A stretch of 58,535 bases of DNA, filler included, from Trichosphaerium sp. ATCC 40318 (GCA_038496445.1; 2 parts of 2 records of this genome joined end to end with filler, not necessarily neighbours in it), one strand, 5' to 3'; numbered from the whole stretch's first letter, positions 20,054-26,786 are shown. Program-made: numbers and translations. Notes: generated by a model from the sequence alone, not told the origin.

Positions 20054-20466
20054 TAGGAGGTGTTGACGTTGTGGTTGTTGTAGTTGACTAACAATGATTC
20101 TTTAAGAGCTTTTTTATCAATCTTAATTTCAATCTAGGAATTGCAATCACTGAATTAAGTTTTATCCAGCTTAAAGGCACTGTGGGGTTATACTAAAATG
20201 TCGAAGAAAAAGTCAAACAAATGTCGAAGTGATATTGAACTGTTCACCACAAAGGGAGACAACTGGGTTATGGCGCTCAGTCGCCGCTAGGCTCTGCCCC
20301 CCAAACCCCCCCCGAATGCCTTAACTTTGTATACTAAATAAATAACCCCTATCCCCCCTAACCAAATTCAATCATTTAAATAAATAAAATTCACTCAAAA
20401 CGTAAGATCAATCACTCACAAAACCAATCATTCATGAATTTCACACAAAATCAATCAAATACTTAT

Positions 20467-21335
20467 CAGGGCTGAAACTAAACAAGGCTTTGCCTTAAAT
20501 ATGGAGGCATTTTTTTAAAATCAGGCATTGATGGCAAAAATCAGGCATTGAAATAAGGCTTTGTTGGGCCATGCCTTAATTGTTGCAATGCCTTGTTTTT
20601 TTTAGGCAATGCCTGCCCTAGTTTTTTCATGCATTGCCAGCCTTAAATTTAAAGGCACCAATTAGGCATTGGTTGTGTACACATTGTACATTAAGGATAC
20701 ATTGGTTTAAGGTAAGTCTCCACCACACCAACACTTCCTAAACATTTTTTTTCATTTACTACTGACGTTTTATATAGACGCCGTCACCAAGCGCTTAGTA
20801 TTTTATGGATTCTAACGAAACCACCGCCATTCGAACCGCAGCACCCAAATGCACCTACAACAGGAGTATAGGTACTTTAAACGATTTTTCCAGTCCGCGA
20901 AAATTATACCAATAATTTGTTAATTTTTTTTTCTAGCTAAAGGTTTTTTTTCACATGGAGGACATTGCAGTTTTTTGTGTTTTGTGTACTGTACTTTAAT
21001 AAATGAATCACTATTGTATGTCTATATAAAGCCTTGTTTTATGAGTATATGGTGCCTGGGTTATGCCCAAAAATTGAGGGCAAAAATGCCTTATTGTTGC
21101 ACAAAAAATGAGGCATTATTGGACCAACAATGCAGGCTATTTTAAGGCTAATTAGTGAACCAGTTGCTTGCTATTTGGCCCAAATATGAGGCTTCAAAGC
21201 CCAAAATTACAAGGCAATGCCTCATATTTGCTCATTTTTTTTGGCAAAAACAAGGCAATTTGGTGAAAAATAAGGCTGTATTTGGTGGCAAAAAAATGGC
21301 TTTTGCAAAAAAAGCCTTATTTAGTTTCAGCCCTG
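20467..21335. mobile_element. CAGGG-family element, copy 2, 869 bp, TAT on both flanks
   Basis: Near-identical to 14534-15462 except for an ~60-bp deletion between GGCAAAAATCAGGCAT direct repeats. Confidence 0.95.
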
Positions 21336-21379
21336 TATTCATTTATTGTAAATACAACCATAACGCACAACAGCTCCTC

Positions 21380-22453
21380 ATGTCTCAACAAATACCACAT
21401 AAAAAGTACTTTGAAAGACCAGCATATCATGGAATGCGGTTTATGTACAAGGGAAAATCCTTATCATTGAGTGCATATTTCTATAAAAGGCTGCAAGAAA
21501 ATTACCCTGGAAAACAAGACTATGAAAATGCAAAGACACTATTTCTTGCTAAGTGTAAGGAAGCAAAAGTGGCTCCAGATGATCCCAACCTTGTTAAAAA
21601 GGTTGGTGGACACATGCCTGCACGCAACATGATGGTATTTGAACCTGAAGTTGCAAAAGCAGTCTGGAAAGTCATGAAAGAAAGAGACTTTGAAGAAGGT
21701 AATAATCAATCTAGAGTCGTCACTATGAAAAACTCTACTACCCTCCCCTACCTAAAAATCACTCACTCACTTTTACTTTAGTTAAGCGCATTGGTACCCT
21801 CAATTGTATAGAGTCAAGCTATGAGCCATGTTACAAGCACAAATACAATAGACCATATTTTATGCTGGGAAGAAAAAAGATAAATTTGGTTCACTTTGGC
21901 TTATTCGCTGAGTATGATATATCAATCTACACACGTACAGGAGAGAAAAAAGATGGCCCCTATTTCTACCTACCTGATGTACCTCGTATGTCTGTGGATG
22001 TGTCACACCTGTGTCACAACCCTCGCTGCATAGAACTAGGAGGTCATCTAGTCATTGAAACTCAAGTAGATAATCTGTCTCGAAATCGGTACAAATCAAT
22101 CAAATAGAAAATCCCGCTAACCTCCCTTACCTAGCTGCAAGTTCATCTTTACAAAAAAGGATCCCAACCACAAATGCACTATACATGGTGTTTCATGTCT
22201 AACCCCCCATGTTAATGAAGAAGCTGTAGAGAGCATGGACAGTATTCAACTAAGATCAATCAGGAGAAGTTACGACACAAGCAATTACAAGTACCGAAAC
22301 CAAAAGAAACATACTGCCCGTCTTAGAAAAGAGTTTGAAGGTAAACTTGCTGAAAGTAGCGGCATTATTAAACGATTCAAAACAAAAACACGTAATCTTG
22401 AGGATGAAGTCCGTAAATTAAAACTACAGCTAAAGCTACAAAATAAACTGTGA
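21380..22453 (+). CDS. His-Cys box (His-Me finger, I-PpoI-like) endonuclease with C-terminal coiled coil, 314 aa, 3 exons
   Basis: Exons 21380-21698, 21782-22088 and 22135-22453 splice in frame. Motif: VSHLCHNPRCIELGGHLVIETQVDNLSRNRC...KCTIHGVSC. Confidence 0.85.
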
Positions 22454-24533: not shown

Positions 24534-24562
24534 CGTTGTTTTGAACTATGACTTAAGTCACA

Positions 24563-25786
24563 ATGGAAAGCCTACCAACGTATCCACACCACGAAAATGT
24601 TTTATTGGGGCAGTCTATGGTTAAACATGGTATAAAAAGCACCATACAACATTTTCAAGCAACACGTGGAAGAGCAAATTATTGGAAAAAAAAAACAACT
24701 GACGCTACATTTCACAGTTCAAACCATGGTACTAATCAAAACAGTGTTAATTAGTGGTTTTGATTAATAAATAGGAGGAAAATGATGGAGCAAGTTTTCT
24801 GATGGTACGGCATTAACTAGAAGCCTAAATCTGTTGCTTAAATCATAATTAGAAGAGATGAAAGTTGTTTGGACTTTGATTTTTATTGTTTATAACAATG
24901 ACTGTCGTACACCTTTTGGAGAGTATGTTACCTATATTAACAGTGTAATTGCTCCTCAAAGTATTTCTGTTCCTTGGCTATCTCGTTTATTTAGATCAAT
25001 TGGATGGACATGGAAAGTACGTAAATTGTTGTTTACAACATGTTTAAACCTAACTAAACAACTTAGGATGTCGAACACCGACAGCTACGAAAATACACTG
25101 CAGAGAATATTGCGCACTATCAGTGTTATGTCACGTGCATATTAAATGTAGATCCACAGCATTTAAAGTACGCTGATGAAGCACACTTTATTTCTCGGGG
25201 TATTTTTTTTTTTCACAAACGGCAATTAATTTTTTGTTCAGCTCTCTATAAAAAACGTGGTCTAAGTCCTGCTGGTGTTAAAATACGAATAATAGAGAGT
25301 GCCCCCATCGACCTATCCTGCACCATCACAATCATGACGTCTGTTGTTCCGGGCAAGGTACTAAACTATTTTTGTGTGATATTAAATTAAACTAAGTATT
25401 AAAACAAGGCACCTGTTGTAGCATCATACCGTACTAATTCAAACACACAATATGATTGGGCGACCTTTGTTGTGTACCTTTTAGAACACAATCATTTGGT
25501 TGCTGGAGATTATTTTGTGGTGGACAATGCTCGTGTCCACAGTGCCAAAGAAACTTTTTCAGAGATATATGAAGCTTGTGCTCTACGAGGAGTACACTAC
25601 ATATTTCTGCCAAAGTATTCTCCAGAACTCAACCCATGTGAACTTGTTTTCGCTCACATAAAGAACCATTTGCGTTACAGACGCCGAAATGATACTTTTT
25701 GGTATGAAATAGCCAAAACAATGGCTACTGTAACTAGAGAGCTTGTAGAAAGTTTCTATGATCATTGTGTACACATGCGTTTTTAA
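24563..25786 (+). CDS. IS630/Tc1-type DD38E transposase (multi-exon; apparent in-frame TGA at 24783-24785)
   Basis: YADEAHF, VVDNARVH and LPKYSPELNPCE motifs, with 38 residues between the second D and the E. The 30-nt exon 24775-24804 reads GGK*WSKFSD. Confidence 0.85.
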
Positions 25787-26786
25787 AATAAATAAAATTT
25801 GTTATTTTGTACACGTGGGTTTTTTTTTTTTCTTGGAAGTGTTCTCTGGCTTCCGCATCACCTTGAAATTTGAATATTTTCGTCAGTTAACCGGTTAGCA
25901 TAGAAATTTAGAAATTTTCACCAGATAACTAACTTTCGTGCATAACCAGTTAAATTTTGACCAACTTGACTGAAACGGACAATAGGATAATTAGTGTGCC
26001 GAATTTTTGACTTTTTTTTGACAAAGTTCTACATATTTGTGTTACCGGCACTGTGACATTGAGCTTAGCAGCATGGATAACATCGTTGTTTTACGCAAAA
26101 ATGCTGCTAACTAAGTCGTTGAATATCAAGAACTTAGCGAATTAAGACTATCAGTGGCAAACTTTTGGTTCTGCTCCGAAAGTGATTAATGGCGGTACTA
26201 ATGGCTGTAGACGCTTTTGATAAGTATTACGTAACTTCAGTCATGTGTTGGCAAGCATACAACGCATTAAAATGTATGAAAAGCGATTGTCCTCGGTAGT
26301 ACAGCACTAATAGCGGTGATGAAATTGGATTGGTCTAAGTGCGGCACTATAATCGCTTCTATGACCTTCCAAGTCCTCACCACTAGTGGTCGTGCAAGCC
26401 TCATAGCACATAAATATGAGATCTTCAAACCAAGTTGTAGCTTTAATTATGTCTGGTATATCAAGATCGAAGCCAAAGTTGTACTTAGATATTCCTACCT
26501 TGCGGAATAAAATAGGCATTCTGGGCAAAAGTAAAAGGACAATTCTAACTAGTGTAATACTGCGCCTTGTCACACTCTATGCGAGTATTAAAAACACTAG
26601 ATTGAGGCCATACAGAACTGTAAAAAACAAGAACATTGTTGTGATTGAATTTTTTTATTATATTTTTGAGAAAAAACGTTGTTCACTGGTTTTCATGTTA
26701 AAAAAAAATGGATTTTTTTTCCCCGTCCGCTTCGGTATTGTACAAATTATTTACACTTAATTTCTATCCCACAAATTTTCTATTTA

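Follow-up and report, generated by a model that had tools for sequence, protein, structure and literature searches.

His-Cys box nucleases are described as residents of group I introns in nuclear ribosomal DNA (rDNA) (PMC3943268, PMC5714182), and the sole reported link between them and DNA transposons is KolobokP, in which a transposase is also present (PMC9587614). We analysed a stretch of DNA from Trichosphaerium sp. ATCC 40318 (hereafter the window; 58,535 nt with filler, two records of the genome joined end to end), and in it the 28.8-kb piece that is contig C374 of a 70.3-Mb, 642-contig eukaryotic assembly. At 20185–26046/7 of the window lies a transposase-less element bounded by terminal inverted repeats (TIRs) and a target-site duplication (TSD), whose only gene of its own encodes, as read from the sequence, an intact I-PpoI-type His-Cys box (His-Me finger) nuclease. 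This 5.86-kb block inserted here as a unit, and the gene within it looks like a one-off passenger, not a proven gene-drive device.

TnpB and Fanzor are RNA-guided RuvC nucleases and the standard cargo of their families. The window nuclease is likewise a non-transposase nuclease riding in a mobile element, but it is a protein-guided His-Me enzyme present in one copy only; no guide-RNA-like structure was found, and the satellite core described below was rejected as an RNA gene or guide (Rfam blank; fold z-scores −1.4 and −1.0). Pack-type elements, such as those of Mutator-like elements (Pack-MULEs), usually carry gene fragments with a recognisable near-identical parent. The window element shares with them host-type coding DNA between the ends of a transposase-less element with an intact TSD, but it holds a whole gene with its own upstream region, the gene has no close parent, and a Mutator superfamily is not supported. 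Of known systems, I-PpoI-type nucleases and KolobokP come nearest. With KolobokP the window element has in common that a eukaryotic TIR transposon carries a small I-PpoI-group His-Me nuclease (S97 and E114 conserved besides H98, H110 and N119) and that direct repeats flank the coding part (PMC9587614). KolobokP elements possess their own DDD/E transposase, TTAA targets and an LTDR-INT-LTDR build, and occur in many copies in seven animal phyla (PMC9587614), whereas the window element has no transposase, an 8-bp duplication and a single gene-bearing copy, and departs from KolobokP in every structural criterion; the pieces flanking its gene are complementary halves of one split miniature inverted-repeat transposable element (MITE), whereas KolobokP has two full terminal repeats.

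Nucleases of the His-Cys box type here form an intron-bearing family of free-standing nuclear genes, extended by an N-terminal module and a predicted coiled coil; one intact member sits inside a proven mobile, transposase-less shell and could be carried round the genome in trans. One sequence motif is common to the gene, its introns and a dispersed minisatellite. If active, the protein would be a compact, dimeric, protein-guided rare cutter with a long target, and would offer a tractable case for the survival of homing-type nucleases outside introns; if the gene is a mere passenger, this is still a clean case of a MITE carrying an entire gene, and its empty site is available.

Insertion of the block as a unit, and its family

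The direct repeat GGCACTGTG stands at 20176–20184 and again at 26047–26055, and the block between opens with GGGTTATAC and closes with GTGTTACC(G). Both ends are G-initial and form imperfect inverted repeats, with 14 of the first 20 positions matching (shuffle p ~0.02). By itself this inverted repeat is too weak to carry the claim of an element; the ends are validated because the same sequences recur as the exact ends of many other copies. BLAST against the genome gave 40 scored matches per end, breaking off exactly at 20185 and 26046, and pattern scans found 44 5′ TIRs, 57 3′ TIRs and 61 copies of an internal 5′ 32-mer (0 for the reversed-pattern controls).

The empty site is preserved on contig C93, a duplicate of both flanks (left 880 bp, 91% identical; right 96–98%), where the flanks abut around 212274–212277 and GGCACTGTG occurs once. 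Homology to C93 begins at about 19305, beside another repeat, and on the right it is colinear up to the contig end (98%). C93 could be a diverged allele or haplotype, or a segmental duplicate; because its flanks are contiguous with a single GGCACTGTG, the whole 5.86 kb is one insertion with a target-site duplication in either case. The duplicated flanks lie within C93:209883–213774 and window 19305–28807, and their left boundary coincides with a repeat of at least 30 copies (window 18900–19250).

Two mobile elements are nested in the block, both on the plus strand: MITE2, a non-autonomous element of 869 bp (20467–21335) inserted 44 bp upstream of the nuclease ATG, and a 3.2-kb Tc1/mariner-like element (22778–25982), which landed in a TA of the MITE and split it there; sibling copies have this TA unbroken. 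Removal of both elements leaves 1,787 bp. Transposase domains in the block occur only within the Tc1-like element, and the MITE shell is without a transposase open reading frame (ORF) of its own. That shell comprises a 5′ terminal part (20185–20312, plus strand), with the imperfect TIR and subterminal AATGTCGAAG and AAAAAGTC repeats, that is 97.7% identical to a 233-bp copy on contig C1, and a 3′ terminal part (25985–26047, plus strand), ending ...GTGTTACC(G), that is 100% identical to the copies on C1 and C235.

The family has about 60 members, with a usual copy of ~230 bp. Ten copies with both ends read measure 184–728 bp, mostly 228–233 bp, and their flanking duplications all differ, so that no insertion-site specificity is apparent; the few long forms (400–730 bp) have a 191-bp minisatellite in the middle. 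In the pattern scans, 5′ and 3′ ends paired on one contig lie no more than 728 bp apart, with the window element as sole exception; among the ~60 members it alone exceeds 728 bp between TIRs, and no other has the nuclease gene. A copy on C158 that seemed to lack its 3′ end proved to be of the short kind, internally deleted and flanked by an 8-bp TSD.

The TSD of the family has a modal length of 8 bp (for example ggagaaat, aagttttg, caaatttc, ttgcgaac and ttcaaaat). In the sub-family of the window copy, every copy seen has a G directly after ...GTGTTACC. Since sibling copies have a 3′ end of ...GTGTTACCG, the ninth matching G here probably belongs to the element as its last base. The duplication is then GCACTGTG at 20177–20184 (9 bp when G20176 is included; present only once in the C93 empty site) and at 26048–26055; neither feature is assigned a strand.

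TIRs, a duplication of fixed 8-bp length and lack of target specificity are the signature of DDE transposition. The MULE model PF10551 gave 0 matches in the 70-Mb genome (a loose first-look scan, which is no proof of absence) and the Merlin/IS1595 model PF12762 matched nowhere across it, whereas the hAT dimerisation domain was found at 22 places (hAT families lie at C161:71027, C631:1628, C80:227025, C48:68650 and C216:890, and at C243:9516, C300:6646, C603:7917, C80:121997 and C19:317869); hAT is the only superfamily with 8-bp TSDs detected in the genome. The ends of the family are unlike classical hAT ends, and a hAT sequence close to a family end on C87 was dismissed as partner, being a remnant beside an ordinary short MITE copy. 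An initial annotation of the locus had described a 9-bp direct repeat and imperfect G-initial TIRs around a unit of about 1.8 kb with two nested elements removed, all of which we recover, and had taken the 9 bp as a TSD typical of Mutator-like elements. A Mutator-like assignment is not supported by these sequences, since the TSD mode is 8 bp and the MULE and IS1595/Merlin models are blank while hAT matches. Its view of a TIR- and TSD-bounded, transposase-less unit with an intact nuclease as its only own gene stands, without the Mutator-like origin. Of the searches that it proposed, the one for other copies with the same ends and different TSDs yielded the ~60 members, and the one for an autonomous MULE with these TIRs yielded neither a MULE match nor a long TIR pair in the genome; ends and TSDs recur, but the gene-bearing form is single-copy.

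The nuclease gene, its protein and its paralogs

The gene lies on the plus strand. Its upstream region (20375–20466), which is also kept in a decayed fragment on contig C134, is followed beyond MITE2 by exon 1 (21380–21698), which encodes a family-specific N-terminal domain (residues 1–106 plus the first base of codon 107), intron 1 (21699–21781; 83 nt, GT-AG, phase 1), exon 2 (21782–22088), with a beta-sheet region and the His-Me finger core (S181, H182, C184, H185, C189, H195, E199, N204, R207 and N208, from PF05551 and the I-PpoI alignment), intron 2 (22089–22134; 46 nt, GT-AG, phase 2) and exon 3 (22135–22453), with the second zinc site, a basic helical tail (residues 244–312) and the TGA stop codon (22451–22453). 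The coding sequence of 945 nt, or 314 aa, is without stops or frameshifts and its splice sites are intact. The C552 and C228 paralogs have both introns at the same positions and in the same phases, but with different intron sequences, and this conservation supports the predicted three-exon model.

Exon 2 matches Pfam PF05551 (zf-His_Me_endon) with 31.1 bits (gathering cut-off 27; E = 3e-7). The signature starts with SHLCH at residue 181 and continues with C189, H195, N204 and R207-N208, then C210-x12-C223-x2-H226-x3-C230. In I-PpoI, the first zinc site consists of C41, C100, C105 and H110 and the second of C125, C132, H134 and C138; H98 is catalytic and N119 binds the metal. A phmmer alignment of exon 2 to I-PpoI residues 81–123 has H98, C100, C105, H110, N119 and R122-N123 in place. 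Across 16 aligned sequences (window protein plus 15 relatives) one S, H, C, C, H, E, N and R are invariant, and S74, H75, E92 and N97 of exon 2 are among these columns; both the catalytic His and the metal-binding Asn are therefore present. For the first zinc site, the equivalents of C100, C105 and H110 are invariant, whereas the candidates for C41 (exon-2 C8 and C16) are not conserved in the alignment. The second zinc site is read from exon 3 and the same pattern is found in C228; exon 3 alone has no Pfam match. According to Kojima and Bao (PMC9587614), S97 and E114 are marks of the I-PpoI group, and the window nuclease has both, because their equivalents sit among the invariant columns.

Window protein and I-PpoI thus share the S-H-L-C-H...C...H...E...N...R-N-x-C core of the His-Cys box (His-Me finger group 12, PF05551) and a second Cys/His cluster, which is C-x12-C-x2-H-x3-C in the former and C-x6-C-x-H-x3-C in the latter. 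At 314 aa the window protein is nearly double the length of I-PpoI (162–163 aa); it has in addition an unrelated domain of 106 aa at the N terminus and a tail of 70 residues that is predicted to form a coiled coil. Unlike I-PpoI, it is encoded outside any group I intron or rDNA, by a gene with two spliceosomal introns that belongs to a dispersed multigene family; an Rfam scan of the 28.8-kb piece (E ≤ 1) found no rRNA and no group I intron. Residence in a self-splicing intron or intein of a conserved gene, the strict mark of a homing endonuclease, is not seen here.

The structural model of exon 2 has a mean predicted local distance difference test score (pLDDT) of 65.4, and I-PpoI occupies the top rows of a Foldseek search with it, though at E = 2.4. 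Comparison of this low-confidence model by VIA with 48,161 representative chains of the PDB returned only three at Z ≥ 2, all His-Me nucleases: I-HmuI [Z 5.0, root-mean-square deviation (rmsd) 2.7, 68 aligned] and I-PpoI (Z 4.1, rmsd 3.5, 71 aligned), the best matches, and the Gme HNH nickase (Z 2.7). For the tail, dimer prediction gave an ipSAE of 0.60 against 0.00 for the best control; among proteins with solved structures, 21 of 30 homodimers attain this mark and 0 of 23 single chains do. Runs agreed in at least 80% of contacts, with partner pLDDT of at least 74, and the contacts are in register with 3-4 spacing over exon-3 residues 35–103. Residues 244–312 are thus predicted to form a parallel coiled-coil homodimer. 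A homodimeric habit is typical of I-PpoI-type nucleases, but here another part of the protein is predicted to make the dimer.

The N-terminal domain (106 residues) has no Pfam match, is blank in the Atlas and has no word-sharing homolog among 5.8 billion proteins; its model (pLDDT 59.7) has no structural match above Z 3.8. The Atlas search with exon 2 was also blank. HMMER with exon 2 against 1.84 billion representative proteins gave five matches, four of them true relatives, including a Lipomyces protein with three tandem boxes; the match P0001 was discarded as a false positive, a bacterial PPC-repeat protein. What the initial annotation had read of the protein holds: 314 aa from three exons, the full His-Cys signature, an extra N-terminal region (given as ~105 aa), a C-terminal coiled coil, for which the model supports a parallel homodimer, and no rDNA or group I intron context.

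A genome search with exon 2 returned 22 box-containing places, that is at least 22 loci; exon 3 found no second match in the genome. The C228 paralog is intact, with three exons, N-domain, box and helical tail, and stands at a unique, non-repeated locus; the C57 paralog has the same N-domain, box and helical-tail build in one open frame of 373 codons. C552 retains exons 1 and 2 and is broken after the first codon of exon 3, and C22, 99% identical to C552, retains exon 1 only. The nearest intact paralog is C228 (~50% protein identity) and the nearest of all is the truncated C552 (67% DNA identity); decayed pieces of the sub-lineage are scattered on C134 and C71 at 87–90% identity. Compared with C552 and C228, the window gene has ratios of nonsynonymous to synonymous divergence (dN/dS) of 0.16 and 0.14, respectively, and dS is saturated; values of ~0.15 with saturated synonymous sites make the family old and constrained. 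The MITE and its satellite are absent from the neighbourhood of C228, C57 and eight more distant members, and no transposase is found among the neighbours of C552 and C22. The family consists of lineage-specific, free-standing nuclear genes under purifying selection, and may be either selfish or host-serving.

A second, larger His-Cys box sub-family occupies loci C19, C408, C54, C139, C76, C133 and C44, with a box exon of ~125 aa ending ...C-x-G-H-x-Y-N-G...C-I-L; of these seven loci, all of them read, two (C408 and C76) have an upstream open frame with MD(N/K)PGELLARLP.

Minisatellite homology and the proposed placement of the gene

The gene sits exactly between two 34-nt direct repeats, D7, which mark a unit junction of the minisatellite (20341–20374 and 22568–22601). 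On its left is a 5′ extension (20313–20374, plus strand) present only in long MITE forms, which ends in a C-rich satellite-junction motif plus CCAAATTCAATCA, the left D7 copy. Its 3′ flank (22460–22777, plus strand) begins with the junction motif 7 nt past the stop codon and holds about one 191–193-bp minisatellite unit (conserved core 22622–22706) and the MITE centre (22731–22777) with a C5-TAAAA-G7 hairpin. In short copies the 5′ part (to ~20312) is joined at the C-run/G-run hairpin to 22731–22777 and the 3′ part; the short C1 copy is 97.7–100% identical to the ends of the window element and without the gene. The long copies on C40, C168 and C17 run on to 20374 and then into 1–3 units of the 191-bp minisatellite. 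Since D7 repeats bracket the gene, these long copies equal the window element minus the gene segment.

A position weight matrix (PWM) for the ~26-nt junction motif, built only from satellite junctions at other loci, was used to scan both strands of the 28.8 kb. The six best independent matches are all on the plus strand and inside the element, at 22565 (27.0 bits), 20338 (24.2), 22460 (21.7), 22106 in intron 2 (20.9), 22715 (15.5) and 21727 in intron 1 (14.7); the null maximum averages 12.7 bits, with its 95th percentile at 16.4 bits. The copy in intron 2 is strong and that in intron 1 weak. Branch-point and pyrimidine signals explain part of this recurrence, but not the post-stop or satellite copies. 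In C552, introns and local satellite share a different motif variant of their own.

The 85-bp satellite core also occurs in TIR-less arrays at seven or more loci, inside long MITEs and upstream of the C552 and C22 paralogs. The C134 fragment (87–89% identical, internally deleted) retains the joint between junction motif and gene upstream region without a TIR in the right place. We do not count it as another element with the gene: the 5′ half of a MITE is found 600 bp from the gene fragment, but in opposite orientation, and no 3′ end follows; the locus appears to be a TE-rich mosaic, the spacer being partly another high-copy repeat. A repeat of ~130–170 bp resembling short interspersed nuclear elements (SINEs), with a poly(A) end and at least 40 copies at 74–94% identity, abuts the decayed fragment there (positions 4750–4930 of the C134 locus L043).

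The module of gene plus satellite is thus older and wider than its stay in this MITE. Together with MITE ends that are 98–100% identical to those of gene-less siblings, this favours a one-off placement or retention of the gene via satellite homology. In this account, to which we assign a probability of roughly 50%, the window element is a copy of a non-autonomous TIR family whose shell would depend on a DDE transposase supplied in trans from a gene elsewhere; going by the 8-bp duplication, a hAT-type enzyme is the best candidate. This movement does not require the nuclease, because nearly identical gene-less copies have transposed. The gene's sub-lineage is tied to the same minisatellite outside MITEs also, and the gene probably entered or stayed in the element, as a one-off inside the internal minisatellite, by recombination or repair-templated copying between satellite arrays. 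Its product would be a zinc-stabilised beta-beta-alpha-metal endonuclease that is dimerised by the C-terminal coiled coil, gains DNA contacts from the N-terminal domain and makes a site-specific double-strand break.

Several points weigh against this account. The genome scans for paired TIRs revealed no autonomous partner with these ends. The long forms on C40, C168 and C17 could be deletion derivatives of a gene-bearing ancestor, because they equal the window element minus the stretch between the D7 repeats, and the gene would then be native to the element lineage; entry of the gene before or after landing at this site may fit equally. The dN/dS values compare old paralogs and are uninformative on constraint since this insertion; expression and splicing of the gene are predictions, and the very recent MITE2 insertion, 44 bp before the ATG, may have shut it down. 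The nuclease fold comes from a model of exon 2 alone at low confidence (pLDDT 65).

The strongest alternative, which we nonetheless hold to be unlikely, takes the nucleases for domesticated host genes, with roles in for example DNA repair, defence or chromatin processing, one of which came to reside in the MITE by accident, through satellite recombination or nearby insertion, and without functional meaning. A large, dispersed and intron-bearing family of old duplicates (dS saturated, dN/dS ~0.15), a conserved three-part architecture and the unique, non-repeated locus of C228 agree with this. The scattered decayed pieces (C134, C71) and truncated genes (C552, C22) better fit a selfish or unstable gene, however, and host genes of this kind sit poorly with the near lack of relatives in the 1.84-billion-protein library and with the failure to find any for the N-terminal domain.

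It is improbable that the nuclease is functional cargo which cleaves alleles that are empty or have lost the element, repair then restoring the element or placing it in the homolog, in the manner of TnpB in IS200/605 elements. The ORF is intact, with the catalytic residues and, apart from a counterpart of I-PpoI C41, the zinc ligands; an empty site shows the element to be truly mobile, and KolobokP sets a precedent for a His-Cys box nuclease in a eukaryotic DNA transposon (PMC9587614). Yet only one of ~60 copies has the gene, gene-less siblings at 98–100% identity have spread alone, the closest intact paralogs lie outside TIR elements and the family lacks insertion-site specificity; as the TSDs all differ, a protein-guided nuclease with one fixed target could protect one locus only. 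A drive or homing interpretation of the nuclease is, from its sequence, possible but unsupported.

There is also a slim chance that the gene is a stranded relic, open but no longer expressed after MITE2 hit its promoter or 5′ untranslated region and the Tc1-like element landed 320 bp downstream, and heading for the state of C552, C22, C134 and C71. The MITE2 insertion next to the gene, 44 bp before the ATG, matches other copies exactly, and the sub-lineage relatives are all truncated or fragmented, whereas 945 nt without stops or frameshifts, intact splice sites and the retention of all invariant residues speak against decay.

Still more doubtful is a reading in which gene-bearing ancestors came first and deletions followed: the element would be the last full-length member of a TIR lineage whose sole protein, a dimeric His-Cys box nuclease, recognises the 26-nt C-rich junction motif. 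Cutting of motifs in gene-less arrays and MITEs would copy the gene in by repair and make the 191-bp minisatellites by induced unequal exchange, which amounts to a homing module on a multicopy transposon/satellite target instead of rDNA. Copies of the junction motif are found on either side of the gene, within each intron and just past the stop codon.

To our knowledge, no His-Me nuclease has strand-transfer activity. We give very little credence to the idea that the MITE family descends from the window element as its full-length founder, with the nuclease as mobility protein, alone or with the junction motif: the element is the longest and sole coding member, long and short MITEs are derivable from it by simple deletions between direct repeats (D7; C-runs by the hairpin), and neither a MULE/Merlin transposase nor a long partner with these ends was detected in the genome, but the family bears the DDE signature, which such a nuclease is not known to produce, hAT transposases exist in the genome, the paralogs are without TIRs and only one copy bears the gene.

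Nested elements and neighbouring sequences

MITE2 has 25-nt TIRs at 96% and at least 40 copies at 97–100% identity, several of them 100% identical; from this copy number and identity the family appears to be active now or very recently, and the copy at this site reads as a very recent arrival. A second copy lies within the window at 14530–15462. A further copy (C57:10413–11343) abuts the 3′ end of the C57 paralog, whose ORF ends at 10419. A weak SECIS_1 match inside the second window copy (14559–14647, plus strand; 26.6 bits against a gathering threshold of 35, E = 0.29) is probably due to chance.

The Tc1/mariner-like element is flanked by a TA duplication (22776–7 and 25983–4) and encodes on the plus strand an intron-containing transposase with a DDE_3 domain (E = 4e-13). 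Its TIRs, of 199 nt at 97%, are unusually long. Open frames on its minus strand (23209–24533), one of them Cys/His-rich, had no match in a Pfam search; the element possibly carries a second gene there.

A large family of genes for cysteine-containing leucine-rich repeats, of which the genome has many copies at 70% identity, is represented in the window at 1880–2959 (minus strand), 15600–18000 and 19582–19920 (minus strand), and the nuclease-bearing element lies ~265 bp from one of its members.

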